Made by a program: the position numbers and the translations under genes. A DNA stretch of 64,000 bases from positions 124,001 through 188,000 of the forward strand of contig CAXLNC010000593.1 of assembly GCA_964187785.1 (NCBI GenBank), written 5' to 3'. The notes under the pieces are model-generated. The model was given only the letters and a program-made list of their open reading frames with translations. It was not told where the DNA came from and made no database searches. The DNA is from Amphiscolops sp. MND2022. Its lineage: Eukaryota. Below are positions 14,401-64,000 of the stretch, piece by piece (the first letter of the stretch is position 1; each line of letters starts with the position of its first letter).

Positions 14401-14805
14401 AATCGGCCGAGAAAGACAACGATTGAGAGACCGAGACAAAGAAGAGCCTCTAGACTCCACTACATACTCTGCGGGGAGGAGGTGGTGACCTCAAACATTG
14501 TGAGGCACTTCTCCTTGAAGCATTGCTACCCGCTAAAATTGCGGAATTACATCTTAAATAAAACCCGAATCCGCCACCAGCAACAGGGCAAGCACCTCAT
14601 TTTTAATGATTGCACTACTTGACTTCGGCGCTTTGTTGTAACTCGATCTCACACACACCATTTTGATTATTGTCATTTATTTGAAGTGCCTGATTTCATG
14701 AGCCTTGATGGTCTTTGTCGCAAGGCAAAGGCCATCATGGCTGTGTGCGATGGGGACTCGAACAACGCGTTTGACCTCCTGAAGGAAGAGTTGGGGAGAG
14801 ACTAA
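11427..14805 (+). pseudogene. Multi-exon AT-hook/tandem zinc-finger gene (AHZ), copy A, disrupted
   Basis: Phase-1 exons at 11427-11571, ~12245-12370, ~13115-13268, ~13353-13509, ~13594-13668, ~13897-13961 and 14219-14805. The last exon has CILC..RHFSLKH but an in-frame TGA at 14620-14622 replacing a Cys, and a degenerate AT-hook (RGHHRK). Confidence 0.8.
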
Positions 14806-15249
14806 CTTACCATAGCCTCTCCTTCTGATTTTTTCAGATTTTCTTCCAGATCATCGATTACATTCATTCCACGTTTTTCAGAACAATTTGCTGAAAAAAA
14901 TTCTTCAAGAAATTCAGAGTTCAATTCGTGGTTCTCGTTTGATAATTTCATTTTGTGTTTTTTTCCAATGAAAATTAGTTTGAGGAAATTCCAAGTCCAA
15001 TTTGTGGTTCAATCCCAACAAACAGTCTTCAAGTAATTCCGAGTTCAATTTGTGTTTTTTTTCCAAAGAAAATTAGTTCAAAGGAATTCCTAGTTCAATT
15101 GGTGGTTCACTTTTATATAATATAAGTTTCAGTAATTCACTCCATGATGTTTTTCGTTTTTAAGACATTAAAACAATTTTTGAGTGCATTTGCTATCACG
15201 ACTTCAAAATAAATAGATTCGTCTTTTTGGAACCATATAAAAAACTCTT

Positions 15250-15730
15250 CCCATATTTGATCTAACCGTTGTTTCAAACGCGAAGTTCAGTCCCCTCCGG
15301 TGCTAATTGTGACTTGCATTCAGTTCATTTTGTTTATTTTTGTCATCCATACGTTCTTTTTTTGCTGTTTTGCTGTGTCGTTACATACTTTCTTCGGTTG
15401 TCCCATTTTACTTTTAGGCTTCCATACCTTCGTTTTTGCGGTGTCGTTACATACTTTCTTCGTTTGTCCCATTTTACTTTTAGGCTTCCATGCGTTCTGG
15501 TTTGCGGTGTCGTTACATACTTTCTTCGGTTGTCCCGTTTTTTTGTCTTTCGGTTGTCCATATGTCTTTTTTGCGGTGTCATGCCATACATACATTACCG
15601 TTTTTGACTTACCCCCGACTATGCCCCCATCCCCACAGCATTCTTCTTCCTCTTCACCCCCCTACCCACTGACTTCTTTCCCATTTGACTATCCCCAACC
15701 CAACAGCACCCGTCCTCTCCTTCCCTTGAC
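15250..15730. repeat. R66 cassette, subtype B
   Basis: Same leader as at ~7050; the units carry ttcttcggttgtccc instead of ttctcttaggtgtccc. Confidence 0.9.
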
Positions 15731-15964
15731 TTTTGCCCAACCTTTACTTTGCATTACTTTGATCAAAGTTTAGCAAATGTAGAAAATCAACATTTGTTTG
15801 CAATTTGCCATGTATACTGGCAATTAGTTAGAATCAAAATAGTTAGTCATCACAGTTTTCAAATAGTGTTTTAATGAGACAGGGATAATACTCTAGACAT
15901 TGGCAAAAAAAGTTCAAGTTTACCCATTCGAAACAACTCTTAAATGACTGGCCCAACTTAATTT

Positions 15965-16915
15965 CGCAGATAACATGTTTTTTTTCTAGTTTATACCCGG
16001 CGTCTTTGAGTTGTTTCGCTTCATCTTTGGGGGAGATGTTTTTCTCGATATCTTAGAAAATTCTCATCGCATCCTGGACATGCTTGGGGGCTGTGGTTTC
16101 CTGAAAGTGAAGAAACTTTCTTTGAAAGTTTCGTTTGTTTGGCCCTTTTTCTGCGGCACGTCGAATTTTTCGTTTACTGCTTTTGTAAAGACTTCGTCCC
16201 GATGTCCAGTCCAGACTAGACGCAACCTCGAACCGTCTTCTTTTGATTTATAATAGTTGTGCAGAAGTTTCCTTTCGTTTGCACTGAGTCCTTTGTGTCT
16301 TTTGACGTGGTCGTTCATATGACCGTGACAGGCCATATCATTGCAAACGATGCACTGTCCGAGATCTGTCTCGGAACCTGTTGAAAGGGAAAAAAATTTT
16401 TATACCTGTTCTAGTTTGAATGTATATATTCTGATAATTTAGATTCTGATATTCTCTAATTCGATTGACAATGAATGAAAAAACTTACTATCGCTCACGG
16501 AAGGATCGACCAGTGTTGATGATAGAGCCAGTATTGGAGGAGAATCATTGGGACCATCTTTCATGGGGTGATGGCCCGCACTAGTGGTGGCTTTGTTCTC
16601 AGCTTCTGTTGGGTAATGTGGTGAGAGTTCATAATCACTCTCGGAACCTGCTGAATATAATTATATATTTTGATCAAGTATCTAAAAAGGAAACGATTGC
16701 TCTGAACTTTAGTTGTAGTCTTTCTAGTATATAGACAGAATTCAATAAACATGTCACGGAATTCCTAAGCGAAATTGTTGATAAAAATCAAGATACTAAT
16801 TTCAATACTAACCATCACTCATGGCTTTCATGAGTTGGTTGCACACTAATGGTGGCTCCCGTCTCAGCCTCTGTGGCATAAGGGTGTGAAAGGTTATCGG
16901 CAGTCTCGGAACCGG
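15965..16915 (-). pseudogene. C2H2 zinc finger + Myb-like gene (ZnF-Myb), copy A, frameshifted
   Basis: Paralog of 62820-63776. The last exon starts at 16377 (CIVC..HVKRH; RLVWT). A G5 run near 16087 (G6 in the intact copy) shifts the frame. Confidence 0.8.
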
Positions 16916-17574
16916 CTGAACATAATACTATATTTTGATCAAGAATTTTAAACGGGTATGATTGATTCTGAACGTAAGTTTTAGTCTAGCCCCGGACCAA
17001 AATTTTGAATTTTACTCTAGATTATACATAGATAGAATTCAGTTTGAATTTCATTGATGGTTTTAAATTTAGCTTAGTTTAGATTCTGATAATTTTTGAA
17101 AAGCACCTAATAAATAAATTGAAGTTTTCTTTCGGTTAAAATTTTGAAGCTAGAATCAACATTTTAGATGAAGACTCATTATCAGATTGACATTATCAGA
17201 TGAAGGCTCTTATTCAGACTTCTAAATATTGCTTGAAAAAAAAGGAATTCTTGAAAATCTAAATAGTTTATCGCAATATTTTGACCCAATTTGAATTTCG
17301 TTGAGGAAAATTTTTCAATTAAAATATGTCAGAATTTCTCCCCGGAATTTCAAAACTAACCTTCACTCAGGATTGAATAGTTGAGCGACAGTGTTGCTAA
17401 GAGCGATGAAAAAGAGCAGAATTTCGAGAGAATTGCGATATTTGATGTTATAGTCACGTCAAGATTAAATTACGTTCGGATCAAGTTTTGTTGATTGATG
17501 AATGCGAGCAGAAGTCGAAGGTTGTGAGAGTAAGTAAGTAAGTTGATACGATCGATGCAAAAGGTTAGACTGAA

Positions 17575-18460
17575 TCGACTTTGCAGTCGACAAAACTTCA
17601 GAAGTCATTATTGAAGGGCCTCCAATCTAATTTTCCTGCAGTGTTAACTAGTTAATTAACTAGTCAATTGCGTAAGGACTTTGCAGCAGAAGACAAAACT
17701 TCTGCGCAGCGGTCATCACTAAAGCACGCCTCACTTCTAAGTTCATCGCAGTGTTAATTAGTTTATCGTGCGATTTCTCTTTAAATCTTTTCACAATTTT
17801 TAAAAGAGTTTTTTCGAAGAATTGTGTGACTATAAGATTTATAGAATTCTCAGAATGTTTTCAGATAGTTTTTTGTCATTGTCGAATCATGATTTTCACT
17901 TGCACTTGTGGTTTGCATCAGAATGTCTTCAAACTATTTTCGTAATCAACCAATCGAAAGCCTCGCTCGGTCTCAGAATGTCTTCATTTTTTCCTCAACA
18001 CTCGATTGTATACTCAGAATGTCTGCAAACTGATTTTTAACTGACCAATTGGGAATGTTGATCAATTGTAGTCTCAGAATGTCTTCAAACCAATGTTTTA
18101 CCTAACCAATCATGAATTTCATTTGATTGTTAACTAGTTATTTAACTAGTTAATTGCGTAAGGACTTTGCAGCAGAAGACAAAACTTCAGCGCAGCGGTC
18201 ATCATTAAAGCACCCCTCACTTCTAATTTGATCGCAGTGCTCAATTGTTGCTCAATTGTAGTCTCAGAATTTCTTCAAACCAATGTTTTACCTAACCAAT
18301 CATGAATTTCATTCGATTGTAGTCTCGGAATGACTTCAAACTAATTTGGTAACTGACCAATCAGAATTTCTATTCATTTGTAGTCCCAGAATGTCTTCAA
18401 ACTAAATTATTATCTGACCAATTAACAATTTCACTCAGTTGTAGTCTCAGAAAGTCTTCA
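17575..18460. repeat. Degenerate tandem repeats: ~110-bp unit (17575-17757, further copy ~18131-18245) nested with tgtagtctcagaat/aaccaatc repeats
   Basis: gcagtgttaa occurs at 17638 and 17748. The block ttaactagt...ggactttgcagcagaagacaaaactt is repeated. gtagtctcagaat recurs about six times. Confidence 0.75.
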
Positions 18461-18544
18461 AATAAGTTTATCACTAGCGAAATAAAAACAATACTCTGTT
18501 GAAGTGTTAGAAAAGATTTAGTGGATGAGTTAGATTGTTTCTGG

Positions 18545-18715
18545 TAATCCCCCCGCAAATGTAAATCTGTAATCCCCCCTCAAAAGTAATTCTGTATTCC
18601 CCCACAAAAATATTTTCCCCACAAATGAAATTCCCCACGAATATAATTCCCCCACAAATATAGTTCCCACACAAATATAAATCCCCCGCAAATGAAATTC
18701 CCCCACGAATATAAC
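18545..18715. repeat. C-rich ~20-bp minisatellite
   Basis: attcccc(c)acaaat / aatccccc(g)caaat repeats. Confidence 0.75.
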
Positions 18716-19234
18716 TTGAGAGGTCAAGTAAAATTTTTGTTGAGCAAAATTAACAACCAAACAGAATTCAGTTTTTTAACGGTCACTGCAATTGATCGCG
18801 TTAACTTTGTAAGAATTTCGGAATACGTTCAATGGAATACTTTACAAATCATTATTCTATTTTGTTGATTCAAATGTAATGAAAACAGCTTCATTTCAAT
18901 CAACAGATGCACAGAAAGGCTTTAACATGGTCAGATTAGGCTGTTGATAGATCCACAGATATCGCCGCCAAGATAAATAAAATCTGGCTCTCCACATGTT
19001 TAAGTTAGCTGCGATATCTGGAAAAAAGTCTAATTTAGCCTCGGCTGCATTTTCTTCTGACTGGATGGATTTTTCCCAAACTTTCCTCTAGGAACCTTAA
19101 TTGACCTTATGACATGTGCACCAATATTTTTGTCGAGTTTCAACTCCTCCATAGTGCTGCCCAAGCAGCGTGCAAGTAAGAGGCCAAGTTAATCCCTAAA
19201 TTCTATCTTGGCCGCGCGATTTGCGAGTTGCGGC

Positions 19235-39290: not shown

Positions 39291-39555
39291 ATTCGTGCCA
39301 AGTTGAATGTTTTCAAATATCACGGCCGAGTTAATCAATCTATCCAGCAATTTCTACCAAATTGCTTAGAAACTGGTGACTTTTCTCAATTGGGACATTC
39401 CTGTAACTATCTCATTCAAGAAAGAAGATCACATGATTGCAAGATTTGAATTTCCAAGTATTATTTTCTTGTCTTTCTGCCTTTTTGCACAGAAAAGACT
39501 GTTTCATGATTGTTTTCTGCTTTTTAACTAGTTTCTTGTTTCTTTGTTTTTTTTT

Positions 39556-39925
39556 GTTTTAATAAACCAGGAGATTCTGGTTTTACAATGTATATGTAAA
39601 TGCATGTATATTATATAATGTACAAAGAATTAGTACCATGAAATTCCGAGACATAATTTTAATGTACAAGTATTTCAAATGTACAATAAATTACAAATAG
39701 GAAAGTATGAGACATAATTCTAGCACACCAATGTATGGTTGTTTTAATAAACCAGGAGATTCTGGTTTTACAATGTATATGTGAATGCATGTATCTTATA
39801 TAATGTACAAAGAATTAAAACCATGAAATTCCGAGACATAATTTAGGTGTACAAGTATTTCAAATGTACAATAAATTACAAATAGGAAAGTATGAGACAT
39901 AATTCTAGCACACCAATGTATTGCA
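39556..39925. repeat. 185-bp tandem dimer (AT-rich) with degenerate third copy
   Basis: aataaaccaggagattctgg at 39561 and 39746; duplicated at ~52900-53260. Confidence 0.85.
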
Positions 39926-40929
39926 TGGAAAATAGGAAATAATTTTAGTATAAATGCATTACATGTGTTTTACAATTATGAAGTACAAGAGTATTACGAA
40001 GACATGTATTATAAATTTAAATGGTTGATGAAAGTTCTGGTAAAAGATTACAATGTAGAATTTCCGAAAAATAATTAAGTTGTACAGGTATTTCAAATGC
40101 ACAATAAATTACTAATAGGAAAGTCTAATGTATTATAAGGTCACAACAATGTATTATATGTATTATAAATGCGAATTGTGGTACAATTGCTTTAAATTTG
40201 GTATAAAATAAGGTACATGTATGTAAGTGCTAATTCATAAAACGATCCAACAAACATTTTGACAAAACTTCTGAATTGGTTTCATGATTTTAAAATGAAT
40301 ATGTTTTTTATGCCTAAGTTGAATTGTAAATAAGTAAGAATTAAACCCCTTTCCAAACGTACAAAATGCAAATTTGAAGAAATTTACATTAGTAGTAAAA
40401 TTTGGCGAAATACTTAAAAATTGACCGCAATGCCCAAAAGTTTCTCCTAAGAGCTCTACTTTTGTCACTCGAAAGTTAAAGCAATTGCGGATACAAATTT
40501 ATTCAGCCACGTCGACACAAAACAACACGAGGCAAAGCCTACGAACTATTGTCTTGAGTACTGTAGTTTCACTTGAGGCAACTCTCTCTGATTTTTTTTT
40601 TGTTTTTCGGCATTTTGTTTGTTTGAAAGGGAAGAAATAACACAAAACAGCTAGTATTTAAAAATACTGGGTGAGAAAAAGGACTGAAATTGTACAATGA
40701 ACTGGTTATTAGCACCAGTACCAGGAAGTTGCTTTTCGCACAAGGCTATGTTCAGTACTGAAATGGTACTGTAGTGGAAATTCTTCGTCTGCCAGTCTTG
40801 TGGTCACGTCTTTACAACTGAATGTCGCCTCCGTCGACTGGTCCGGATTTGACGTTGTATTGAATCGGTCATTTTAGGCGGAATGAGACTCAAACTTGAT
40901 TTTAAAAATTGTGGAACACTCGGTTTTGA

Positions 40930-41330
40930 TTGAAAAAAGTTGAAAAAAAATATGAAATTCGGAGACACCCACTTTTGATAGGCTTAGAAGAAACGTGCAT
41001 ATGATTTGAAAAATAACTTGATGAAATTCGGAGACACTCACTTTCGATTGGCTTAAAAGAAACGTGCATATGATTTGAAAAAAAATGATGAATTTCGGAG
41101 ACACTTACTTTTGATTGGCTTAGAAGAAACGTGCATATATTTTTGAAAAAAAAATTGATGAAATTCGGAGACACTCGATTTTGATTGGCTTAGAAGAAAC
41201 ATGCATATGATTTGAAAAAAAATAATAATTTGATGAAATTCGGGGACACTGAGTTTTGATTGGCTCAGATGAAACGTGCATTCAATTCAAAAAAAATACT
41301 TTGATTAAGTTCGGAGACACTGATTGGTTA
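40930..41330. repeat. ~69-bp minisatellite downstream of the YR gene
   Basis: gaaattcggagacactc...gattggcttagaagaaacgtgcatatgatttg at ~40954, 41023, 41090, 41160, 41234; duplicated at ~54265-54730. Confidence 0.88.
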
Positions 41331-42109
41331 AGGTGCAGAAAATTCTGCATTAAAACGTGCAGAAAATTCGAAAAAAAATCTAAAGAAACTCTGAGATACT
41401 CAAATGGAAATGGTTGAAAAGCAGCGTGCGAAAAAATCAGAATTTTCGAGAGCCTAGAAAAAACTTGGACCCAAAGTTCATTCCGTCATGGAACAGTCTC
41501 GACTGTTCAAATCATTTCAGATGATTGTTGAACGACGATTTGACTTTGTTGTATATGGTGGTGACGTCGTTTGCCTCTAAAAAGTGACCGGCGTCACGCA
41601 ACATACGCTCAACTTGTTTCCTTGAAACATTCGTCGTTATGTCGTAGAAAACAGGCAGCGCATCTGCCCATAGTGGCCTTGTTTCTACGCCTTTGAACCT
41701 CAGCAAACTCTGAATGTATCTTTCTCGTTTGGGGCAACGCGGTGGGGGCGGTTCTTCTGGCCGAACGTCACTGACTCGTTGACCGTCACTGAAAACTACA
41801 CCCCCTGCCATTGGTCGTTTCCGTTTCCCAGATGGCTGTGACCCTTTGTCCTCAATTTCATCATCTCTTGTGGTGGACTCCATGATGTTGCTTGTCATCA
41901 TCAGACTGTCGTCTCGCAACCACGGAGTTTCCTCTGCCCACTTGACCCTGTCCTACCTGTGGAACACCCCCCGACCCTGACTGGAAATTCTGTGATGCGC
42001 CCTGCCCTGTACTCCTAACGTCTTGCCCTCTCCTTTCCCGACCCGGTTCCTCTTCAGTTGTTGGTTGTAGAGCCAGCTGCCGCCTCGTCTTCCCTTTTAA
42101 AACATGAAA

Positions 42110-42420
42110 GGTGACTCAAAACGCTAGAGAAAATTATGAAAAAGAATTTAAAGAAAATCGGAGACTCTCGATTGTAATTGGCGGACACAAAACGCTAGAG
42201 AAAATTATGAAAAAATATTTTAAAGAAGTTCGGAGACTCTCGATTGTAATTGGCGGACACAAAACGCTAGAGAAAATTATGAAAAATATTTTAAAGAAAT
42301 TCGGAGACTCTCGATTGTAATTGGCGGACACAAAACGCTTGAGAAAATTATGAAAAATATTTTAAAGAAGTTCGGAGACTCTCGTTTGTAATTGGCTGAC
42401 ATAAAACACTAGAGATAAAT
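42110..42420. repeat. ~71-bp intronic minisatellite (YR gene intron 3)
   Basis: caaaacgctagagaaaatt at 42117, 42188, 42260, 42331; duplicated at ~55515-55815. Confidence 0.9.
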
Positions 42421-43659
42421 AAAAAAAGACATGAAGGCATTCTTAGACACTGTTCTACTAACCCCGTTCCGCGCGCTCAATTTCTTTCTGCCTCGCTTCT
42501 CTCACCGCTAATGGAGTCGCATCCCCGATTGTTGAGGCAGTTGAATCAACCGGGACAGTTACATTCACTGGTTCTGGCACCTCGTCTTCTTCGGGGACTG
42601 CGCGAAGATCGTTGACGAGGTGATCCAGCAATCGATGTCTGTTGGCAATATTGGCTGACATGTAATATTTCTCAGCTGTTTGCTGTGTATGCCCAGTCTG
42701 GTGCAGATGCTCGGTCATGACATCAGCAGCGATTTCCTCATTCTGCCTCAGCTGCTGCATTCTCCCCTCCCTGTACTTCCTCATTGAGTTGGAGTTGAAG
42801 CGGATGTCAGTGGCTCTATCGCCGAACTTCGCTGCGAAGACTTCGGAGATCTCGCGAGCCATACTTCTATCCGCTGTACCCTTCTGAGTAGAAAAGATCA
42901 GTACCGGAACTGCCTGGAACTCTCGTCGGTACGTCTCTTTCAAGTGGTACAGGAGGGGGATCTGGTCAGGCTCCACACGGAGGGCGACGTCGTAATATTG
43001 GCCGGTTTTGTGTCTGCTCGTCAAAACCGACCCGCTTCGTTGGATTTCCTCGAGCATTTCCCAAGTCAAGTTCATAATTGGCTGATTTCTTGGCTGGTAG
43101 GAAGTAGTTGAGGGCTTTCTCCTCCTTCAAAGAAAGACTCTCTTCCTCAACGTTTTCCTGCAACAGCTTCAGAACTTGCTCGTGGCGTGTTACCACGATG
43201 TTGTGGCTGGACACCAGCTTGAAGCGTTCGTCAGCCTTCCTCCGGCTATCGCAAGCAGCGCTGGTTGTGTAAATCGATTTCACTTCGTTCATGGCAGCGT
43301 GGATCCGGGCAGCGTCGATGTTGTCGCGGATCACAAGATAGTCCACGAATTTCTTCAGGCATGCCAAGTACGTCAAGATCGTTTGAGGGGCCAGTCGCTG
43401 ACGTTTCTGGATCATCATCGTCACCTGGAGTAATCTGTGGGTTTCCTGGAAGTGGTTTGTTTCCCCGTAGAACGTCGCGAGCGTGTTTTTTAGCCAAGGC
43501 CGGCTGCGGTCCTTTCCAGAATCTCCGGTGCATGCTTCCAGCGCTTGCCTCTGGTGCTGAATGTATTCTTCAACACGCTCGACGTCCGTTCTACGGGCCA
43601 CGCGGCTCTCTTTCATCTTATTTCTAAGCGACTGTGGCAGAGACCTGGAAAAAAATTAG

Positions 43660-44140
43660 AAGTTTAAAAATTCTGATAACACAGTATGAAAAATACTTCG
43701 GAGCTAGAAAAAGGTTAAGGAAATTCTGATAACGCAGTATGAAAAATATTTTTGATCATGAAAAATTCAAGGAAATTCTAATAACGCAGTATGAAAAAGA
43801 TTTTCGAGTTCGAAAAATATTAAAGAAATTCTGATAACGCAGAATGAAAAAAAAATTTCGAGCTAGAAAAAAAATAAGGAAATTCTGATAACGCAGTATG
43901 AAAAATATTTTCGAGCTAGAAAAATATTAAGGAAATTCTGATAACGCAGAATGAAAAAAAAATTCGAGCAAGAAAAAAAATAAGGAAATTCTGATAACGC
44001 AGTATGGAAAAGATTTTCGAGTTAGAAAAAGATTAAGGAAATTCTGATAACGCAGAATGAAACAAAATTTTCGAGCTAGAAAAAAATTAAGGAAATTCTG
44101 ATAACGCAGTATGAAAAATAATTTCGAGCTAGAAAGAGTT
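43660..44140. repeat. ~53-bp intronic minisatellite (YR gene intron 2)
   Basis: aaattctgataacgcag at 43721, 43773, 43826, 43880...; duplicated at ~57065-57540. Confidence 0.9.
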
Positions 44141-44555
44141 AATCCGATGACTACTCACTTCACAATTCGAAACTCCGGTAGCTTCTCCAGGTGACCAGGA
44201 CATCTCGATTTGTGAGTTGGTACCGAAGCAACACGGCGCATACACGTCGAGCAGAACCTGACTACTGTCTTCGAATCGCGGAAGCGGTAGTAGTCTTTAA
44301 TCAGAGTCTGTTCGGTTTCGGTGAGGAGATCGCCGTGCACGTGCTTCAAGTGCCGATCAATTCGCACAACAGACACATGGCAAATGATGCACTCGTTCTC
44401 CTGTGAGTATTTGGCTCGCTTCTCTTTCGCAACTGCGGCATCAACAGGAGCATTTTGAGGCACATCAGATGTTCCTGGTTGTTCATCCTTTGCATTGTGT
44501 GGAAAAACTGCCGGCATTTCCATCAACCGCTGCACTGACATTTCTTGCGGCACGT

Positions 44556-51469: not shown

Positions 51470-52100
51470 CTTCCCATATTTGATGTAACCGTTGTTTCAA
51501 ACGTGAAGCGCAGTTCCCTCCGGTGCTAATTTTGTCTTGCATTCAGTTCTTGTCGTATGTTTTCGTCGTCCATACGTTCTTTTTTGCGGTGTCGTTTCAT
51601 ACTTCTTCTCTTAGGTGTCCCATTTTGTATTTAGGCGTCCATACCTTTTTTTGCGGTGTCGTTTCATACTTCTTCTCTTAGGTGTCCCATTTTGTATTTA
51701 GGCGTCCATACGTTCTTTTTTGCGGTGTCGTTTCATACTTCTTCTCTTAGGTGTCCCACTTTGTATTTAGGCGTCCATACCTTTTTTTGCGGTGTCGTTT
51801 CATACTTCTTCTCTTAGGTGTCCCATTTTGTATTTAGGCGTCCATACCTTTTTTTGCGGTGTCGTTTCATACTTCTTCTCTTAGGTGTCCCATGTTCCTT
51901 TTGAGCGTCCATACTTTTTTGGTGTCGTGTCATACGTATATTTTCCCTTTAGGCGTCCCATTCACTTTTAGGAGTCATTTTTGTCGCGATTTCGACTTAA
52001 CCCCGACTACTCCTCCCCCCATTTCCACAGCAGTCGTCTTCTTCCCCACAATGGTCTTCCTCTAGCGTCCTCCACTTGACTTTCCCGTCTCTTGACCGAC
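51470..52100. repeat. R66 cassette, subtype A
   Basis: Duplicate of 38140-38760. Confidence 0.92.
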
Positions 52101-52319
52101 AATTTTACAAGGTTTCAATTTTAGTATGCTTTACTATTTTACAATTGCTTTATTTTTTATTAGCAATCAAAATGTACATTTTCAATCAGTTAGAATTCAA
52201 TCAGTTGGTAATCGGATTTTTCAGAGTAGAGTTTTCAGTGAGACAAGGATAATACTCTGGACTTTTGAAGAAGGTTGTAATTTTGCCATTCGAAACAACG
52301 CTTAGTGTAATCTGGATTA

Positions 52320-52630
52320 TTGGTTCTTTTTCAAACAAAACTGATTCAAGAAATTCCGAGATCAATTCGTGGTTGTTTTTCAAACAAAACTGATTCAAGA
52401 AATTCCGAGATCAATCCGTGGTTCTTTTTTCAAACAAAACTGATTCAAGAAATTCCGAGATCAATCCGTGCTTCTTTTTTTCAAACAAAACTGATTCAGG
52501 AAATTCCGAGATCAATCCGTGGTTCTTTCTCAAACAAAACTGATTCAAGAAATTCCGAGATCAATTCGTGGTTCTTTTTCAAACAAAACTGATTAAAGAA
52601 AATCCGAGATCAATTCGTGGTTCTTTTTCA
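52320..52630. repeat. R49 minisatellite
   Basis: ~6 copies. Confidence 0.92.
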
Positions 52631-54917
52631 TTCGTGCCAAGTTGAATGTTTTCAAATATCACGGCCAAGTTAATCAATCTATCCAGCAATTTCTACCAAA
52701 TTGCTTAGAAACTGGTGACTTTTCTCAATTAGGACATTCCTGTAACTATCTCATTCAAGAAAGAAGATCACATGATTGCAAGATTTGAATTTCCAATTAT
52801 TATTTTCTTGTCTTTCTGCCTTTTTGCACAGAAAAGACTGTTTCATGATTGTTTTCTGCTTTTTAACTAGTTTCTTGTTTCTTTGTTTTTTTTTGTTTTA
52901 ATAAACCAGGAGATTCTGGTTTTACAATGTATATGTAAATGCATGTATATTATATAATGTACAAAGAATTAGAACCATGAAATTCCGAGACATAATTTTA
53001 ATGTACAAGTATTTCAAATGTACAATAAATTACAAATAGGAAAGTATGAGACATAATTTAGCACACCAATGTATGGTTGTTTTAATAAACCAGGAGATTC
53101 TGGTTTTACAATGTATATGTGAATGCATGTATCTTATATGTACAAAGAATTAAAACCATGAAAATCCGAGACATAATTTAGGTGTACAAGTATTTCAAAT
53201 GTACAATAAATTACAAATAGGAAAGTATGAGACATAATTCTAGCACACCAATGTATTGCATGGAAAATAAGAAATAATTTTAGTATAAATGCATTACATG
53301 TGTTTTACAATTATGAAGTACAAAAGTATTACGAAGACATGTATTATAAATTTAAATGGTTGATGAAAGTTCTGGTAAAAGATTACAATGTAGAATTTCC
53401 GAAAAATAATTAAGTTGTACAGGTAGTTCAAATGCACAATAAATTACTAATAGGAAATTCTAATGTATTATAAGGTCACAACAATGTATTATATGTATTA
53501 TAAATGCGAATTGTGGTACAATTGCTTTAAATTTGGTATAAAATAAGGTACATGTATGTAAGTGCTAATTCATAAAACGATCCAACAAACATTTTGACAA
53601 AACTTCTGAATTGGTTTCATGATTTTAAAATGAATATGTTTTTTATGCCTAAGTTGAATTGTAAATAAGTAAGAATTAAACCCCTTTCCAAACGTACAAA
53701 ATGCAAATTTGAAGAAATTTACATTATTAGTAAAATTTGGCGAAATACTTAAAAATTGACCGCAATGCCCAAAAGTTTCTCCTAAAAGCTCTACTTTTGT
53801 CACTCGAAAGTTAAAGCAATTGCGGATACAAATTTATTCAGCCACGTCGACACAAAACAACACGAGGCAAAGCCCACGAACTATTGTCTTGAGTACTGTA
53901 GTTTCACTTGAGGCAACTCTCTCTGAATTTTTTTGTTTTTCGGCATTTTGTTTGTTTGAAAGGGAAGAAATAACACAAAACAGCTAGTATTTAAAAATAC
54001 TGGGTGAGAAAAAGAACTGAAATTGTACAATGAACTGGTTATTAGCACCAGTACCAGGAAGTTGCTTTTCGCACAAGGCTATGTTCAGTACTGAAATGGT
54101 ACTGTAGTGGAAATTCTTCGTCTGCCAGTCTTGTGGTCACGTCTTTACAACTGAATGTCGCCTCCGTCGACTGGTCCGGATTTGACGTTGTATTGAATCG
54201 GTCATTTTAGGCGGAATGAGACTCAAACTTGATTTTAAAAATTGTGGAACACTCGGTTTTGATTGAAAAAAGTTGAAAAAAATATGAAATTCGGAGACAC
54301 CCACTTTTGATAGGCTTAGAAGAAACGTGCATATGATTTGAAAAATAACTTGATGAAATTCGGAGACACTCACTTTCGATTGGCTTAGAAGAAACGTGCA
54401 TATGATTTGAAAAAAAAATGATGAATTTCGGAGACACTTACTTTTGATTGGCTTAGAAGAAACGTGCATATATTTTTGAAAAAAAAATGATGAAATTCGG
54501 AGACACTCACTTTTGATTGGCTTAGAAGAAACGTGCATATGATTTGAAAAAAAAACAATTTGATGAAATTCGGAGACACTCGATTTTGATTGGCTTAGAA
54601 GAAACATGCATATGATTTGAAAAAAAATAATAATTTGATGAAATTCGGGGACACTGAGTTTTGATTGGCTCAGATGAAACGTGCATTCAATTCAAAAAAA
54701 AATACTTTGATTAAGTTCGGAGACACTGATTGGTTAAGGTGCAGAAAATTCTGCATTAAAACGTGCAGAAAATTCGAAAAAAAATCTAAAGAAACTCTGA
54801 GATACTCAAATGGAAATGGTTGAAAAGCAGCGTGCGAAAAAATCAGAATTTTCGAGAGCCTAGAAAAAACTTGGACCCAAAGTTCATTCCGCCATGGAAC
54901 AGTCTCGACTGTTCAAA

Positions 54918-57900
54918 TCATTTCAGATGATTGTTGAACGACGATTTGACTTTGTTGTATATGGTGGTGACGTCGTTTGCCTCTAAAAAGTGACCGGCGT
55001 CACGCAACATACGCTCAACTTGTTTCCTTGAAACGTTCGTCGTTATGTCGTAGAAAACAGGCAGCGCATCTGCCCATAGTGGCCTTGTTTCTACGCCTTT
55101 GAACATCAGCAAACTCTGAATGTATCTTTCTCGTTTGGGGCAACGCGGTGGGGGCGGTTCTTCTGGCCGAACGTCACTGACTCGTTGACCGTCACTGAAA
55201 ACTACACCCCCTGCCATTGGTCGTTTCCGTTTCCCAGATGGCTGTGACCCTTTGTCCTCAATTTCATCATCTCTTGTGGTGGACTCCATGATGTTGCTTG
55301 TCATCATCAGACTGTCGTCTCGCAACCACGGAGTTTCCTCTGCCACTTGACCCTGTCCTACCTGTGGAACACCCCCCGACCCTGACTGGAAACTCTGTGA
55401 TGCGCCCTGCCCTGTACTCCTAACGTCTTGCCCTCTCCTTTCCCGACCCGGTTCCTCTTCAGTTGTTGGTTGTAGAGCCAGCTGCCGCCTCGTCTTCCCT
55501 TTTAAAACATGAAAGGTGACTCAAAACGCTAGAGAAAATTATGAAAAATAATTTAAAGAAAATCGGAGACTCTCGATTGTAATTGGCGGACACAAAACGC
55601 TAGAGAAAATTATGAAAAAATATTTTAAAGAAGTTCGGAGACTCTCGATTGTAATTGGCGGACACAAAACGCTAGAGAAAATTGTGAAAAATATTTTAAA
55701 GAAATTCGGAGACTCTCGATTGTAATTGGCGGACACAAAACGCTTGAGAAAATTATGAAAAATATTTTAAAGAAGTTCGGAGACTCTCGATTGTAATTGG
55801 CTGACATAAAACACTAGAGATAAATAAAAAAGACATGAAGGCATTCTTAGACACTGTTCTACTAACCCCGTTCCGCGCGCTCAATTTCTTTCTGCCTCGC
55901 TTCTCTCACCGCTAATGGAGTCGCATCCCCGATTGTTGAGGCAGTTGAATCAACCGGGACAGTTACATTTACTGGTTCTGGCACCTCGTCTTCTTCGGGG
56001 ACTGCGCGAAGATCGTTGACGAGGTGATCCAGCAATCGATGTCTGTTGGCAATATTGGCTGACATGTAATATTTCTCAGCTGTTTGCTGTGTATGCCCAG
56101 TCTGGTGCAGATGCTCGGTCATGACATCAGCAGCGATTTCCTCATTCTGCCTCAGCTGCTGCATTCTCCCCTCCCTGTACTTCCTCATTGAGTTGGAGTT
56201 GAAGCGGATGTCAGTGGCTCTATCGCCGAACTTCGCTGCGAAGACTTCGGAGATCTCGCGAGCCATACTTCTATCCGCTGTACCCTTCTGAGTAGAAAAG
56301 ATCAGTACCGGAACTGCCTGGAACTCTCGTCGGTACGTCTCTTTCAAGTGGTACAGGAGGGGGATCTGGTCAGGCTCCACACGGAGGGCGACGTCGTAAT
56401 ATTGGCCGGTTTTGTGTCTGCTCGTCAAAACCGACCCGCTTCGTTGGATTTCCTCGAGCATTTGCCAAGTCAAGTTCATAATTGGCTGATTTCTTGGCTG
56501 GTAGGAAGTAGTTGAGGGCTTTCTCCTCCTTCAAAGAAAGACTCTCTTCCTCAACGTTTTCCTGCAACAGCTTCAGAACTTGCTCGTGGCGTGTTACCAC
56601 GATGTTGTGGCTGGACACCAGCTTGAAGCGTTCGTCAGCCTTCCTCCGGCTATCGCAAGCAGCGCTGGTTGTGTAAATCGATTTCACTTCGTTCATGGCA
56701 GCGTGGATCCGGGCAGCGTCGATGTTGTCGCGGATCACAAGATAGTCCACGAATTTCTTCAGGCATGCCAAATACGTCAAGATCGTTTGAAGGGCCAGTC
56801 GCTGACGTTTCTGGATCATCATCGTCACCTGGAGTAATCTGTGGGTTTCCTGGAAGTGGTTTGTTTCCCCGTAGAACGTCGCGAGCGTGTTTTTTAGCCA
56901 AGGCCGGCTGCGGTCCTTTCCAGAATCTCCGGTGCATGCTTCCAGCGCTTGCCTCTGGTGCTGAATGTATTCTTCAACACGCTCGACGTCCGTTCTACGG
57001 GCCACGCGGCTCTCTTTCATCTTATTTCTAAGCGACTGTGGCAGAGACCTGGAAAAAATTAGAAGTTTAAAAATTCTGATAACACAGTATGAAAAATACT
57101 TCGGAGCTAGAAAAAGGTTAAGGAAATTCTGATAACGTAGTATGAAAAATATTTTTGATCATGAAAAATTCAAGGAAATTCTAATAACGCAGTATGAAAA
57201 AGATTTTCGAGTTAGAAAAATATTAAAGAAATTCTGATAACGCAGAATGAAAAAAAAATTTCGAGCTAGAAAATAGATAAGGAAATTCTGATAACGCAGT
57301 ATGAAAAATATTTTCGAGCTAGAAAAATATTAAGGAAATTCTGATAACGCAGAATGAAAAAAAAATTCGAGCAAGAAAAAAAATAAGGAAATTCTGATAA
57401 CGCAGTATGGAAAAGATTTTCGAGTTAGAAAAAGATTAAGGAAATTCTGATAACGCAGAATGAAACAAAATTTTCGAGCTAGAAAAAAATTAAGGAAATT
57501 CTGATAACGCAGTATGAAAAATATTTTCGAGCTAGAAAGAGTTAATCCGATGACTACTCACTTCACAATTCGAAACTCCGGTAGCTTCTCCAGGTGACCA
57601 GGACATCTCGATTTGTGAGTTGGTACCGAAGCAACACGGCGCATACACGTCGAGCAGAACCTGACTACTGTCTTCGAATCGCGGAAGCGGTAGTAGTCTT
57701 TAATCAGAGTCTGTTCGGTTTCGGTGAGGAGATCGCCGTGCACGTGCTTCAAGTGCCGATCAATTCGCACAACAGACACATGGCAAATGATGCACTCGTT
57801 CTCCTGTGAGTATTTGGCTCGCTTCTCTTTCGCAACTGCGGCATCAACAGGAGCATTTTGAGGCACATCAGATGTTCCTGGTTGTTCATCCTTTGCATTG

Positions 57901-59335
57901 TGTGGAAAAACTGCCGGCATTTCCATCAACCGCTGCACTGACATTTCTTGCGGCACTGACATTACTTCTTCCGGCACTGCTGATTCCAATGAGTCTGTGT
58001 CCGCATCGGAGAGAACAGGCGCACTCATAAGCTCGCAGAAGACTGGTTGTTGATTCATCAGCTGCTCTTCCGGCATTGAACTCAATGCATCCACTTCCTC
58101 TTCTTGGAAAGCAGGATTTGAAGCAGCAGCTAACTCTTCGACCAAGTCAGCTGTCATCTCGTAACCCAATGATTCTGGGTCTTCAGCTTGGGGGAGTTGC
58201 GCCATCATCCTCGTCCAGTTGCATTTCTGACACAAACAGTCGACATTGCCCTCGCCGAAGTAATCATCAGAGTACTTGACGAGCAATTGCGCACCGGGCA
58301 AAATGTTTTCAAGAGCTTTCACCTTGACGATGGTCCTCGCCTTGGTACCCGAACAGACAAACTCCACGTTCGGCTCGCACGAGTGGTTGATGAAACTCGC
58401 GGGCCCGAGCATGATTCGGTCTCCGCTTTTTCCGCCGAATACTGAGAAACACTGCTCAGGGCTGAGCTCACCTTCCACTTTCTCAAGGAATCCAACCAAT
58501 CCTAAACGAGATGAGGTTTACAAATTTGAAAATACATCAATGAATTTCAATAGGAATATTCCGGGAACAAATAGTTTCTAGTTTACGACTTATTGTTTTC
58601 TATTGAAGTCTGTAGAAAATCAGAAAAAAACAGCCTAAAAAATTTTGAGACACTCGAATAAAATTTTGTTGTAACTTTATTCGAAATTCAGAAAATAATT
58701 TGATAATTTTCTGAGAGACTCGTTTGTAATTGGTTGAAAAGAAGCCTGTAAAGAATTCAAAAAATTACCTAAAGAAATTTTGAGACACTCGAATATAATT
58801 GGTTTACACATGTTCCATTTATTTTGTTAGAAATAAATTCGAAATTCAAAAAATACTTTGATGAAATTTTGAGAGACTCATTTGTAATTGGTTAAAAAGA
58901 AGCTTGTAAAATTCAAAAAAATACCTAAAGAAATTTCAAGACACTCGAATATAATTGGTTCAAACAAGTTTTATCTATTTTGTAATAAATTTAACTTTGT
59001 TATAATTCAAAAAAACTCTGATATTAACCATCAATGATGAAGCCTTTAGGCAGCGGTCCCACTGCTTCATTGGGCACGTAAACAGCGAAGCTGTCCGAAA
59101 GATCGGACGGGTAGTTTACGTATTCCGCCCGGATATCAACTTTTTGCATACTCAGCAAGTAGCTCTGAAAGAGATCATTGTACAGCTTCAGAGCACCCTT
59201 CTGCCTAATCGCTTCTTTGAAATCGCTGGCGATATAGAATTTGTGTGACGTTTTGTCATTGTCGATTAGTTGCTTTGTAACTTCAGCGTCCATTGCTCCT
59301 AACAAGTTGCATTTTGACAAGTTTGTAGAGGCCAT
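54918..59335 (-). CDS. Four-exon Suv4-20-like SET - zinc-finger pair - tyrosine recombinase fusion gene (~1000 aa if one frameshift at ~56480-56510 is repaired)
   Basis: Exons 59335-59029, 58501-57562, 57048-55867 and 55498-54918, all GT-AG, with split codons G|GA, AA|G and G|GG in frame. SET: LGPASFINHSCEPN..VKAL..LLVKY..DYFGE..CLCQKC. YR: RNQPIMNLTW, HKTG, NSMRK, TGHTQQTAEKYY. Confidence 0.88.
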
Positions 59336-59394
59336 TTTTTAAATTGAAATAGAAAGTAGGTTGCTGGATCGAAATTTAAATTGAATTGAATCGA

Positions 59395-59620
59395 CATTGA
59401 AATTGAAGAGGTAGGGTTGAATGAACGTTGCGGTTTCGAAATCGATGGAGAAGTTTGAAAAGTAGTTGTGTTAAGCACACTATCTTGGAGATCGCAAAAA
59501 GTTTTAAATTGAAATTGAAGAAGTAGGAATGAATGAAGGTTGCTGTTTTAAAGTAGATCGAAAAGTTTGAAAAGTCATTGAGCTGAACGTACTAGCTTGG
59601 AGATCGCAAAAAGTTTTAAT
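59395..59620. promoter_or_regulatory. ~112-bp tandem dimer immediately upstream of the SET-YR start codon
   Basis: attgaaattgaag at 59396 and 59508, each unit ending ttggagatcgcaaaaagtttta. A regulatory role is inferred from position only. Confidence 0.35.
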
Positions 59621-60629
59621 GATTTTGCTATTGAAAGACCAGAGCTTGAGGAAGCCACTAATTAACACTTAACCTACAACACCATCATCATTTCCACTCA
59701 ATCGCATTCAATTACCTCATATTTCATTAACTTGAGTCAATTTTAATTCGAAATGCGGTTAGATATAATTATTTTCCAATTAGCAATAGGTGTAGAAGCT
59801 GCATGATTAAGAGTAAAATAGTGATGAAATTACCTTCTGTCGAATAATTAAATGAAACGATATGATATTTTGATTAATGTAAGCAATTAAAATTCAATTA
59901 CCTCAAATTTCAGCAACTTGAGTTAATTTTAATTCGAAATGCGTTTGGATATAATTACTTTCCAATTAGCAATAGGTGTAGACGTTGCATGAACAAGAGT
60001 AAAATAGTGATGAAATTACCTTCTGTCGAATGAATAAAGGAAACGATTTGATATTTTGATTAATGTAAGCAATACGTTAAAATCGTGGTATTCCAAACAT
60101 GCTTGGTGGGGGAAGGATAACAAAAGACGAGCTTTCAAAAATTTTCACTGAAGAAATTCGGAATAAAAAATGACTAAGACCTCATGAATCAAACTACAAT
60201 TCAGAGCAAACAGCTAGTCAGTTGATATTCGATTAAAAAATTTACTTGCTAGTATTCCGAGAACGTTTGATAAAATTGTACTTTTTCCAGAAATGCATCC
60301 TGTCGGAAATGCAGACAAAGTGGCAGAACAGAAACAAACTACAATTCAGTGCAAACAGCTAGTCAGCAAGTGTCCGACGCCAGCAAGTCCAATTTGTGCT
60401 TCATTCGCAAAAAAACATTCTTCAGTTCCGAGTTCAAAAAAAACATCCGAGTTCAATTTGTGTTTTTTTTTCATATAAAATTAATTCAAAGAAATTCCTA
60501 GTTCAATTTGTCTTTTTTCCCAAAAAAGTTTGAGAAATTCCGAGTTCAATTCATGGTTTTTTTTCCAAAAAAAATTCATTTGAAGGATAATAATTAGATT
60601 CGTCTTCTTGGAACCATTTAAAAAACTCT

Positions 60630-61190
60630 TCCCATATTTGATGTAACCGTTGTTTCAAACGTGAAGCGCAGTTCCCTCCGGTGCTAATTTTGTCTTGCAT
60701 TCAGTTCTTGTCGTATGTTTTCGTCGTTCATACGTTCTTTTTTGCGGTGTCGTTTCATACTTCTTCTCTTAGGTGTCCCATTTTGTATTTAGGCGTTCAT
60801 ACCTTTTTTGCGGTGTCGTTTCATCCTTCTTCTCTTAGGTGTCTGATTTTGTATTTAGGCGTCCATACGTTCTTTTTTGCGGTGTCGTTTCATACTTCTT
60901 CTCTTAGGTGTCCCATTTTGTATTTAGGCGTCCATACTTTTTTTGCGGTGTCGTTTCATACTTCTTCTCTTAGGTGTCCCATTTTGTATTTAGGCGTCCA
61001 TACTTTTTTGGTGTCGTTTCATACGTATATTTTCCCTTTAGGCGTCCCATTTAGTTTTAGGAGTCATTTTTGTCGCGTTTTCGTTTTAACCCCGACTACT
61101 CCTCCCCCCCCCATTCCCACAGCAGTCGTCTTCTTCCCCACAATGGTCTTCCTCTAGCGTCCTCCCCTTGACTTTCCCGTCTCTTGACCT
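60630..61190. repeat. R66 cassette, subtype A
   Basis: Leader, ~5 units and tail. Confidence 0.92.
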
Positions 61191-61394
61191 ACAATTTTAC
61201 AAGGTTTCAATTTTAGTATGCTTTACTATTTTACAATTGCTTTTTTTATTAGCAATCAAAATGTACATTTTCAATCAGTTAGAATTCAATCAGTTGGTAA
61301 TCGGATTTTTCAGAGTAGAGTTTTCAGTGAGACAAGGATAATACTCTGGACTTTTGAAGAAAGTTGGAATTTTGCCATTCGAAACAACGCTTAG

Positions 61395-62335
61395 TGTAAG
61401 CTGGATTATTTGTTCTTTTTCAAACAAAACTGATTCAAGAAATTCCGAGATCAATTCGTGGTTGTTTTTCAAACGAAACTGATTCAAGAAATTCCGAGAT
61501 CAATCCGTGGTTCTTTTTTTCAAACAAAACTGATTCAAGAATTTCCGAGATCATTCCGTGGTTCTTTTTTTTTCAAACAAAACTGATTCAAAAAATTCCG
61601 AGATCAATCCGTGGTTCTTTCTCAAACAAAACTGATTCGAGAAATTCCGAGATCAATTTGTGGTTCTTTCTCATACAAAATTGATTCAAGAAATTCCGAG
61701 ATCAATTCGTGGTTCTTTTTCAAACAAAACTGATTCAAGAAATTCCGAGATCAATTCGTGGTTCTTTTTCAAACAAAACTGATTCAAGAAATTCCTAGAT
61801 CAATTCGTGGTTCTTTTTCAAACAAAACGGATTCAAGAAATTCCGAGAACAATTCGTGGTTCTTTTTCAAACAAAACTGATTCAAGAAATTCCGAGATCA
61901 ATTCGTGGTTCTTTTTCAAACAAAACTGATTCAAGAAATTCCGAGATCAATTCGTGGTTCTTTTTCAAACAAAACGGATTCAAGAAATTCCGAGATCAAT
62001 TCGTGGTTCTTTTTCAAACAAAACTGATTCAAGAAATTCCGAGATCAATTCGTGGTTCTTTTTCAAACAAAACTGATTCAAGAAATTCCGAGATCACTTT
62101 GTGGTTTTTTTTTCAAACAAAACTGATTCAAGAAAGTCCGAGAACAACTAGTGGTTCTTTTTCAAACAAAACTGATTCAAGAAATTCCGAGATCAATTCG
62201 TGGTTCTTTTTCAAACAAACCTGATTAAAGAAATTCAGAGATCAATTCGTGGTTCTTTTTCTAACAAAACTGATTAAAGAAATTCCGAGATCAATTCTGG
62301 TTCTTTTTCAAACAAAACTGATTCAAGAAATTCCA
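61395..62335. repeat. R49 minisatellite, longest array (~19 copies)
   Basis: 49-bp period (e.g. 61868, 61917). Confidence 0.95.
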
Positions 62336-62819
62336 CGCTCTGTTTCAGACTCAGACCAACAGAAATAACTACTGTAGACTCAGAATCTCTTCAAATTACT
62401 GACCAACCAAAAACGTCATTCCGTTGTACACTCCGAATATTTTCTAGATATTTTTTACGGACCAATTAGAAACCTCACTTGGCCAAAGACTTGGAATATG
62501 TTTAAAGTAATTTTGTTCACTGACAAATCAGAAACCTCACTCGATTGTAGTCTCAGAATACCTTCAAAACATAATTTTCAACTGAATAATCAGAAACCTC
62601 ACTCGATTGTAGACTCAGAATATCTCCAAATGTATTTTTTCGAAAATCAATGACACTACATGGGGGTACAATAAAAAATATTATATGCAAACAACAAATT
62701 ATAACGACACTACATGGGGGTACATTCAAAAATAATACGTCAATATCAAGGTATGCAATATTGAAAAAAAACCAAATTACTTCATGTGATTATTATATGC
62801 AGATTTTACCTGTTATAAA

Positions 62820-63776
62820 TTAGATTAACATGTTTTTTTCTAGTTTATACCCGGCGTCTTTGAGCTGTTTCGCTACATATTTGGGGGAAACGTTTTTCTC
62901 GATATCTTGGAATATTCTCATTGCATCCTGGACATGCTTGGGGGGCTGTGGTTTCCTGAAAGTGAGTAAACTTTTTTTGAAAGATTTGTTTGTGTGGCCC
63001 TTTTTTTGTGACACGTCGAATGTTTCGTTTACTGCTTTTGTAAAGACTTCGTCTCGTTGTCCAGTCCAGACTAGACGCAACCTCGAACCGTCTTCTTTCA
63101 ATTTATAAAAGTTGCGCAGAAGTTTGCTTTCTTTTGCACTGAGTCCTTTGTGTCTTTTGACGTGGTCGTACATGTGACCGTGACACACCATATCACTGCA
63201 AACGATGCACTGTTCGAGATCTGTCTCGGAACCTGTTGAAAAAAAAACTTTTTATACAAAACAAGTTCTAGTTTGAATGAATATATTCTAATAATTTAGA
63301 TTCTGATAATCTCTAATTTGATTGACAATGAATAAAAAACTTACTACCGCTCACGGAAGGATCGACCAGTGTTGATGATAGGGCCAGTATTGAAGGAGAT
63401 TCATTGGGACCATCAATCATGGGGTGGTTGCCCGCACTAGTGGTGGCTTGGTTCTCATCTTCTGTTGGGTAATGTGGTGAAAGTTCATCACCACTCTTGG
63501 AACCTGCTGAATATAATTATATATTTTGATCAAGTATCTAAAAAGGAAATGATCGCTTCTGAGTTTGGTTCTAGTCCTTCTAGTATATAGACTGAATTCT
63601 ATAAACATGTCACGGAATTCCTAAGCGAAATTGTTGATAAAAATTAGGATACTAATTTCAAAACTAACCATCACTCATGGCTTGGTTGCTTTCATGAGTT
63701 GGTTGCACACTGATGGTGGTTCCCGTCTCAGCCTCTGTGGCATAATGATGTGAAAAGTCATCGGCAGTCTCGGAAC
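62820..63776 (-). CDS. ZnF-Myb gene copy B, three intact phase-1 exons (5' end not identified)
   Basis: Exons 63776-63669 (108 nt), 63503-63345 (159 nt) and 63232-62820 (413 nt) splice in frame. CIVC-x12-HVKRH, then RLVWTGQRDEVFTKAV..PPKHVQDAM..VAKQLK. Confidence 0.82.
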
Positions 63777-64000
63777 CTGTTGAACATAATACTATATTTT
63801 GATCAAGTATTTAAACGAGTATGATTGGTTCTGAACGTAAGTTTTAGTCCGGCCCCAGACCGAACTTTTGAGTTTTACTGTAGATTATACAGATAGAATT
63901 CAATTTGAATTTCATTGAGACTTTTAAATTTAGTTTTGTTTAGAATCTGATAATTTTTGAAAAGCACTTGATAAATAAACTGAAGATTTTTTTTCGGTTA

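Follow-up and report, generated by a model that had tools for sequence, protein, structure and literature searches.

A SET domain fused to a tyrosine recombinase in a decayed copy of a probable Crypton-type transposon from Amphiscolops sp. MND2022

INTRODUCTION

Transposons are usually the targets of chromatin silencing, and a gene that joins a SET domain to a tyrosine recombinase (YR) raises the question of whether a mobile element can carry a chromatin-modifying module of its own. Such a gene was noticed on the minus strand of a 64,000-nt stretch of Amphiscolops sp. MND2022 (assembly GCA_964187785.1, contig CAXLNC010000593.1, positions 124,001 to 188,000), hereafter referred to as the window. 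The original prediction, which was made without database searches, described a spliced gene encoding a SET domain of the Suv4-20/KMT5B-C type, a zinc-finger pair and a YR, and regarded it as an integrase with its own heterochromatin-writing enzyme. Here, we report that the fusion is real and old and is a property of a mobile element rather than of the host. In all likelihood, a Crypton-type transposon has left a decayed copy here; the sole gene of this element encodes, in this order, a SET domain, a linker, two zinc fingers, a YR and a C-terminal domain. This Crypton-type, microsatellite-associated context of the gene was missed by the original prediction.

RESULTS AND DISCUSSION

A SET domain and a tyrosine recombinase in one gene

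We compared the gene with its relatives, all of which come from ENA, Logan or JGI assemblies. In P0039 (895 aa, from a JGI metagenome), a SET domain, acidic repeats, the zinc-finger pair, the recombinase and the C-terminal domain lie in one open reading frame (ORF), and P0128 (839 aa) and P0093/P0094 (1365 aa) likewise contain SET and recombinase in a single uninterrupted ORF. Because these relatives encode both domains without interruption, the fusion seen in the window is not a splicing artefact, and the proposal that SET and YR belong to one spliced gene is borne out. Family members of ~700 aa that lack the SET domain also exist. Three divergent lineages were found in one assembly, with 93%, 58% and 34% identity to the window protein. 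A word-indexed search with full-length P0039 returned only P0039 itself and one unrelated SET protein.

For the window gene, five minus-strand ORFs had been joined in frame through three GT-AG introns. We read the ORFs, donors and acceptors and obtained the same structure (Table 1), including the junction RIVK|SLPQSLRNKMKES. The exons sum to 3010 nt (307 + 940 + 1182 + 581), one base over a multiple of three as noted originally, and the surplus base is a single frameshift in exon 3/4; because this exon holds the frameshift, the four exons appear as five ORFs. A check by script detected no in-frame stop codon in the exons, and exon 5 is open in a single frame from the acceptor to the stop. The intron 2 donor is of a strong consensus type and its acceptor is pyrimidine-rich, and the GC content of the exons (45–52%) contrasts with that of the introns (25–32%). 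The encoded domains are, in order, SET, acidic linker, zinc-finger pair, YR (helical N-terminal and catalytic parts) and the conserved C-terminal domain. The gene was searched exon by exon, and the searches, folds and statistics given here are not based on the spliced sequence.

All three junctions are in frame with GT..AG ends, and each is backed by at least one relative. At locus L003, the lineage with 58% identity, the contiguous ORF P0088 (210 aa) corresponds to exon 1 and the start of exon 2 without intron 1, and the ORF P0002 runs from zinc finger 2 into the recombinase, uninterrupted across the site of intron 2. The reading of P0002 ends exactly at the end of window exon 4, and P0102, further on, matches exon 5 (44% identity, E = 1e-43) with the same residues directly after the acceptor; intron 3 is therefore common to the window and L003. 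Locus L002, the copy with 93% identity, keeps introns 1, 2 and 3. Because exon 4 matches 69 relatives and exon 2 passes the Pfam cut-off for SET, the gene model is not a product of chance.

The introns are themselves unusual. They consist almost entirely of tandem arrays with units of 53–71 nt, and a short GAAATTC-type core is common to these and to the two arrays in the non-coding parts of the element (Table 1). Introns 1 and 2 are missing both from L003 and from the single-ORF relatives. The introns thus look as if they were gained when repeat arrays with GT..AG ends were inserted or expanded.

The tyrosine-recombinase domain

An exhaustive HMMER search with the exon-4 piece identified 69 relatives (best E = 3.7e-73). 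We aligned 23 sequences of the family, the window's exon-4 piece included, and placed the catalytic residues by the alignment pattern, not by superposition. An Arg, the Lys of HKTG, the Arg of S.RK, a His and the Tyr are near-invariant and appear in the order typical of tyrosine recombinases, and all are present in the window pieces. A search with the profile of this alignment found matches among ENA proteins only.

In the AlphaFold2 (AF2) model of P0005, a relative taken from the alignment, the predicted local distance difference test score (pLDDT) of the core exceeded 90. When this model was compared with the PDB using Foldseek, nearly all of the matches listed were tyrosine recombinases, with a probability of up to 1.00, and they included XerA, lambda Int, XerH, Flp, Cre and Tn1549 Int. 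Against BFVD, the matches were integrases and VLF-1 proteins of nudiviruses and baculoviruses (E ~1e-3); the VLF-1 matches were no better than those to phage integrases, and no specially close viral relative was found in that database. The predicted fold and the near-invariant residues support the assignment of a YR to exon 3/4. The YR proposed originally is thus supported; because sequence profiles were not significant, its assignment rests on the predicted fold.

The SET domain, zinc fingers and C-terminal domain

Exon 2 scored 34.5 bits with Pfam SET (PF00856; cut-off 22.4 bits, E = 2.9e-8). Its ten best matches among PDB sequences were all KMT5B/SUV420H1/SUV420H2 (E = 9.4e-13 to 7.2e-11), and the next SET families were far weaker (NSD1, 1.1e-3; NSD, ASH1L, KMT2 and SETD2, 1e-3 or worse). 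The SET ORF of L003 gave the same pattern, with KMT5B/C nearest, and the chlorella virus vSET was a weak match of both sequences. The predicted Suv4-20/KMT5B-C type is accordingly supported: KMT5B and KMT5C are the best and specific match of the SET core and the post-SET Cys motif, and the N-terminal part is not recognisably KMT5-like. This SET type is carried by the window copy, L003 and P0039, and all three retain NHSC and the Cys cluster of the post-SET region. The SET region of exon 2 aligns with P0039 at 5e-11. Exon 1 alone had no Pfam match and aligns with residues 1–103 of P0088 at 48% identity.

The divergence of SET within a clade is similar to that of the recombinase; for example, P0093 and P0128 share 42% identity in SET and 36% in the recombinase. 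For this reason, the SET domain is a long-standing and presumably functional part of the protein. A specificity for H4K20 and a role in heterochromatin would be suggested only by the nearest SET family.

The zinc-finger pair downstream of the acidic linker, which had also been predicted, is conserved in its motifs across the family (P0033, P0042, P0044, P0045, P0065, P0014 and P0039), and this region of exon 2 aligns with P0039 at 2e-6. Pfam gave no significant match for the pair (zf-C2H2_2, 0.16). For the last ~70 residues encoded by exon 5, an alignment with the extreme C-terminus of P0014 was obtained (E = 1e-4), and most full-length relatives also have this domain.

A sister family in microsatellites

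A search for other genomic copies had been suggested at the outset, and such copies were found: a duplicate within the window, L002, L003 and nine contigs encoding P0094. The nine contigs (L005–L013, ENA assembly ERZ25074608) encode P0094 identically. They have in common a block that is 99.98–100% identical, and their outer flanks are unrelated. The unique body of this sister element is 9,348 bp long and contains one long ORF; no reverse transcriptase (RT), RNase H, capsid, polymerase or other gene was detected in it besides this ORF. In every copy with its ends inside the fetched locus, a (GTA)n tract of 15 to 943 units lies at either side of the body. An inverted 9-mer lies ~10 bp inside each end, and these are its only two occurrences in the 24-kb locus. 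A structure of this kind marks an element that was amplified recently and lies in microsatellites. Because it is a single-gene element with near-identical copies and (GTA)n flanks of differing length, we assign it to the Crypton-type YR DNA transposons.

Two candidates for further genes of the element were rejected. The upstream ORFs of L012 and L013 (984 and 957 aa) are translations of the (GTA)n tract, and the RT matches in L004, L005 and L013 belong to neighbouring long terminal repeat (LTR) elements outside the bounds of the element.

Some further observations were made on the relatives. An older copy of the 1365-aa family (L004, 9369–13198) has a SET ORF and a zinc finger-YR ORF that overlap in different frames, and is therefore broken by one frame change, whereas the other members of this family are intact. 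Additional SET-domain ORFs lie within 10 kb of intact elements at L006 (19907–23336) and L009 (3275–4447), which suggests clustering or nesting of family members. At L001, the metagenome contig, the 895-aa SET-YR ORF is preceded by ~11 copies of a ~19-nt GC-rich motif, and 3' of it an array with a 36-nt period contains 12 inverted copies of the ~19-nt motif (796–2192, 5060–5572 and 5904–6160); the contig ends before any element boundary. These arrays are possible candidates for binding sites of the recombinase or the zinc fingers.

Decay and duplication of the window copy

We then placed the window copy within its own lineage. It is collinear with L002 from 60591 to 52636 and, in its 5' region between 64000 and 60477, with the second element of L003. 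Because of this collinearity, the 49-nt array upstream of the gene is element sequence rather than flank. The repeats at 51327–52630 and 60485–61722 had been considered as LTR-like flanks; this was rejected, as the upstream block is the 5' region of the element and the arrays recur in the window. The window-lineage element is ~13–14 kb long, and in its 5' region there are tandem arrays rather than genes. Between 48 and 64 kb, the window showed no inverted repeats; there was no RT match in the window gene or between its ends, and no Rfam match in the window.

The termini of L002 and L003 are homologous. In both, clustered YAACTTGGCC motifs are followed by a microsatellite, (AGAT)39 in L002 and (TAGA)n in L003, and past the latter come the terminal 10-mer in inverted and direct orientation and then the 5' region of a second element. 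The microsatellite is one-sided in L002 and L003, and both-sided in L005–L013. Compared with L002, the window copy has lost the last ~125 nt of its 3' end together with the microsatellite.

The window copy is a decayed, inactive pseudogene copy, with a frameshift in the recombinase exon and its 3' end lost. Because of the frameshift it is unable to make the full protein. The idea of a working integrase with its own heterochromatin writer accordingly fails for this copy. L002 differs from it by four frame-changing and three in-frame indels, and the ratio of non-synonymous to synonymous substitution rates (dN/dS) between the two is 0.75, counted from 18 synonymous differences and 47 non-synonymous ones, a value near that of neutral decay. 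Over 31216–57956, a segment of ~13.3 kb (period ~13.34 kb) is duplicated in tandem at ~98.8% identity, 31216–41323 corresponding to 44556–54657 and 40940–44553 to 54338–57956. The junction at 44553/44556 cuts the second SET-YR copy inside exon 2. Exon 1 and the beginning of exon 2 are missing from this copy, which has the same frameshift in exon 3/4 and one further frame-changing indel in exon 5. The decay, the near-neutral dN/dS and the coexistence of divergent lineages are together in keeping with a transposon family rather than a host gene.

Table 1. Features of the window and their positions
Feature	Position	Strand	Remarks
Whole SET-zinc finger-YR gene	54918..59335	(-)	4 exons and 3 introns; 1 frameshift
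Exon 1	59029..59335	(-)	307 nt; N-terminal region and SET start
Intron 1	58502..59028	(-)	GT..AG, 527 nt, 25% GC; largely tandem arrays
Exon 2	57562..58501	(-)	940 nt; SET C-terminal half, post-SET Cys cluster, acidic linker, zinc-finger pair
KMT5B/C-like SET core	58218..58430	(-)	PDB match; includes NHSC and CxCxxC
NHSC cofactor-binding motif	58377-58388	(-)	motif read by script
CxCxxC post-SET motif	58221-58238	(-)	motif read by script
Zinc-finger-like pair	57603..57794	(-)	Cys2-His2-like, then Cys2-His-Cys-like; motif positions from script
Intron 2	57049..57561	(-)	GT..AG, 513 nt, 28% GC; 53-nt tandem array, ~9 units
Exon 3/4	55867..57048	(-)	1182 nt; helical N-terminal (core-binding-like) domain and YR catalytic domain; frameshift inside
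HKTG	56405-56416	(-)	YR catalytic-domain landmark
SMRK	56180-56191	(-)	YR catalytic-domain landmark
H..QTGH	56093-56113	(-)	YR catalytic-domain landmark
Tyr motif	56063-56077	(-)	YR catalytic-domain landmark
Intron 3	55499..55866	(-)	GT..AG, 368 nt, 32% GC; 71-nt tandem array
Exon 5	54918..55498	(-)	581 nt including stop; low-complexity linker and conserved C-terminal domain
Conserved C-terminal ~70-aa domain	54921-55133	(-)	within exon 5
3' non-coding part	52636..54917	(-)	collinear with L002
69-nt array	54276-54703		in 3' non-coding part
Terminal 10-mer TAACTTGGCC	52663-52672		single copy; first of five terminal 10-mers
5' non-coding part	59336..64000	(-)	continues past window end
49-nt array	61412-62334		in 5' non-coding part
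Second, truncated SET-YR copy	39297..44553	(-)	product of 13.3-kb tandem segmental duplication
5' terminal part of another family element	13264..19233	(-)	86-88% identity; collinear with L003:12955 onward
ROR-like receptor tyrosine kinase gene copies	4090-6459; 35376-37751; 48709-51089

Comparison with known elements

Cryptons are DNA transposons with a YR as their only enzyme and without LTRs, and the short direct repeats at their ends are the supposed substrate of recombination (PMC3212892). Some of them have introns and an extra C-terminal domain, and the main paper on the superfamily makes no mention of a SET domain, a zinc-finger pair or microsatellite targeting (PMC3212892). The present element likewise resembles the Crypton superfamily (CryptonF/S/A/I; Goodwin 2003; Kojima & Jurka 2011) in having a single gene, a YR as sole enzyme, no RT and no LTRs. 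However, the ends of the sister family are not short direct repeats as in Cryptons but whole microsatellite tracts, (GTA)n at both ends in nine copies. Pfam detected neither DUF3504, the CryptonA domain, nor GCR1_C in the window pieces or the relatives scanned.

According to PMC8869645, which cites Kapitonov & Jurka (Repbase Reports 2012), some CryptonV families insert specifically in microsatellites, and the source note is listed there under a title on target-site-specific Cryptons from cnidarians. By this description, CryptonV would match the (GTA)n-flanked sister family and, with their 3' (AGAT)n and (TAGA)n, L002 and L003 in combining a YR with an association with microsatellites. The element is therefore probably a Crypton-type YR DNA transposon, putatively of the CryptonV group. 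The element type, including the microsatellite kind listed as CryptonV, is thus already known, and for the SET fusion we found no description: a full-text literature search for an element with a SET domain and a YR gave general reviews only, the content of the CryptonV Repbase note not being covered by it.

Other YR elements, DIRS, Ngaro and PAT, carry RT and RNase H and have split or inverted terminal repeats; RT and RNase H were not found in the present element. A SET domain is fused to the Hsmar1 mariner transposase in the primate protein SETMAR (Metnase), which is similar in that a SET lysine methyltransferase and the DNA-breaking enzyme of a transposon share one polypeptide. However, SETMAR is a host gene in which a DDE transposase was captured downstream of a SET gene, whereas the fusion described here is the mobile element's own; its enzyme is a YR, and its SET domain is N-terminal and of the KMT5B/C type.

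Chromatin- or DNA-modifying modules are also found in other selfish elements, such as the integrase chromodomains of chromoviruses, the methyltransferase-like domain of DIRS and the chlorella virus vSET, and the likeness lies in a selfish element having its own chromatin reader or writer. To our knowledge, a SET domain is fused to a YR in none of these three cases. The YRs of crustacean nimaviruses combine a C2H2 domain with repeat-specific integration, at telomeres or ribosomal DNA; they have N-terminal zinc-binding and SAM-like domains, some are multi-exon, and no SET domain is reported for them (PMC10871703). They resemble the present element by the text of that paper, and they belong to animal viruses.

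Proposed mechanism and alternative explanations

How might such an element use its two enzymes? The recombinase would move the element by site-specific recombination. Because two inverted short motifs bracket the repeat tract, we infer a YR site with its crossover in the microsatellite, the inverted motifs at the element ends serving as putative binding sites; the outcome would be an element flanked by microsatellite on both sides. The zinc fingers, the N-terminal recombinase domain or both would read the predicted subterminal motifs. With greater reserve, the SET domain might have nucleosomes as its substrate, either those of the element or those of the target, and by writing or binding their H4 tails link recombination to the state of the chromatin. 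We tentatively propose, as one possibility, a YR transposon lineage that has long carried an N-terminal SET domain, KMT5B/C-like or other, uses the microsatellite as its crossover core and, where it sits, would write or read chromatin of the H4K20 type.

Several observations weigh against our main explanation, the decayed Crypton-type element. With regard to the recombinase, the window pieces alone had no Pfam or PDB-sequence match, the profile of the 23 sequences had no match among PDB sequences, and Pfam Phage_integrase was detected in three of 23 relatives, always below the gathering score (best 23.8 against 27.1 bits). The Foldseek figures for P0005 are modest (E = 5.8e-3, TM-score 0.40–0.47 per target), and the position of the usual first His, in the second box, is Asn in most members of the alignment. 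Microsatellites are missing from the ends of the window copy, and target specificity is for this reason shown for the relatives only. With regard to the SET domain, the sequence likeness to KMT5B/C is limited to the C-terminal half (~70–85 residues), and the AF2 model of the SET ORF P0088, built from a six-row alignment, had a pLDDT of 38. Moreover, the SET domain of P0093 and P0128 is of another type, closest to KMT2A/SETD2, and BLASTP detected no similarity between this type and the KMT5B/C-like one; given two such dissimilar types, the domain may have been acquired twice.

Some of these points would favour a different reading, which we also consider possible, namely that the SET domain does not write histone marks; catalytically silent or retargeted, it would tether the recombinase to the tails of histone H4 or would methylate some protein other than a histone. 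The element would then read or exploit chromatin without writing heterochromatin. This accords with the KMT5B/C likeness being confined to the C-terminal half and with exon 1 having no family match, and the different SET type in other lineages suggests that the scaffold matters more than H4K20 specificity. However, the window copy, L003 and P0039 all retain the cofactor-binding NHSC and the Cys cluster of the post-SET region, and the conservation of SET across lineages is similar to that of the recombinase (42% compared with 36% identity between P0128 and P0093), as would be expected of a working domain.

The gene is unlikely to be the integrase module of a larger virus-like element, such as an endogenous large DNA virus or a Polinton-like element. 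The best folds in BFVD do include VLF-1 of nudiviruses and baculoviruses, and the window-lineage element is long, with a 5' region that is not fully accounted for. However, this region is made of arrays rather than genes, VLF-1 fits no better than phage integrases (E ~1e-3), and the sister element has sharp boundaries 9.35 kb apart, between which lie one long ORF and neither capsid nor polymerase.

It is less probable still that the SET-zinc finger part and the recombinase are two adjacent genes and that the 'introns' are repeat insertions. The introns are indeed tandem arrays, and two of them are missing in L003; however, P0002 reads from the zinc fingers into the recombinase across the site of intron 2, the single ORFs P0039, P0128 and P0093 have the same domain order, and the three junctions are in frame with GT..AG ends and a strong GC contrast.

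Finally, a host gene, in which a domesticated recombinase and a Suv4-20 paralogue of the cell had been joined, its copies being ordinary gene duplicates, would agree with the spliceosomal-type introns, unusual among the relatives, and with the segmentally duplicated setting beside a receptor-kinase gene family, but is the least credible explanation, since the window copy, its duplicate and L002 are all broken in different ways, dN/dS is 0.75, lineages at 93%, 58% and 34% identity share one assembly, and one lineage has nine identical copies at unrelated sites.

If the proposed transposon with a chromatin-directed SET-recombinase fusion is correct, a selfish element would by itself shape, or home to, a chromatin state, and, should the writing or reading of chromatin hold, it would be the first fusion of a chromatin writer and a recombinase native to a transposon to be described. 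The nine identical copies between microsatellites are a natural system whose genomes and epigenomes directly show the choice of target, the structure of the ends and the chromatin marks. For annotation, the SET-YR gene of the window should be treated as a pseudogene copy in a repeat-rich, duplicated region and not as a host Suv4-20 gene.

Neighbouring features of the window

The window also contains three copies, 89–99% identical, of an intronless ROR-like receptor tyrosine kinase gene encoding Frizzled, Kringle and kinase domains. Each of the two newer copies is split into ORFs of 536 and 128 aa, and because these overlap by 13 nt, a frame change is likely in both. A relative of 791 aa (P0114, ENA assembly) shows 96% identity. 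Positions 1–4128 are occupied by a satellite with a period of ~180 nt, whose units are 92–95% identical and produce long spurious ORFs. Runs of N are present at 19235–19382 and 19883–20082. The terminus (19170–19233) of the other family element stops at the first of these runs; the homologous terminus in L003 abuts (TAGA)n.

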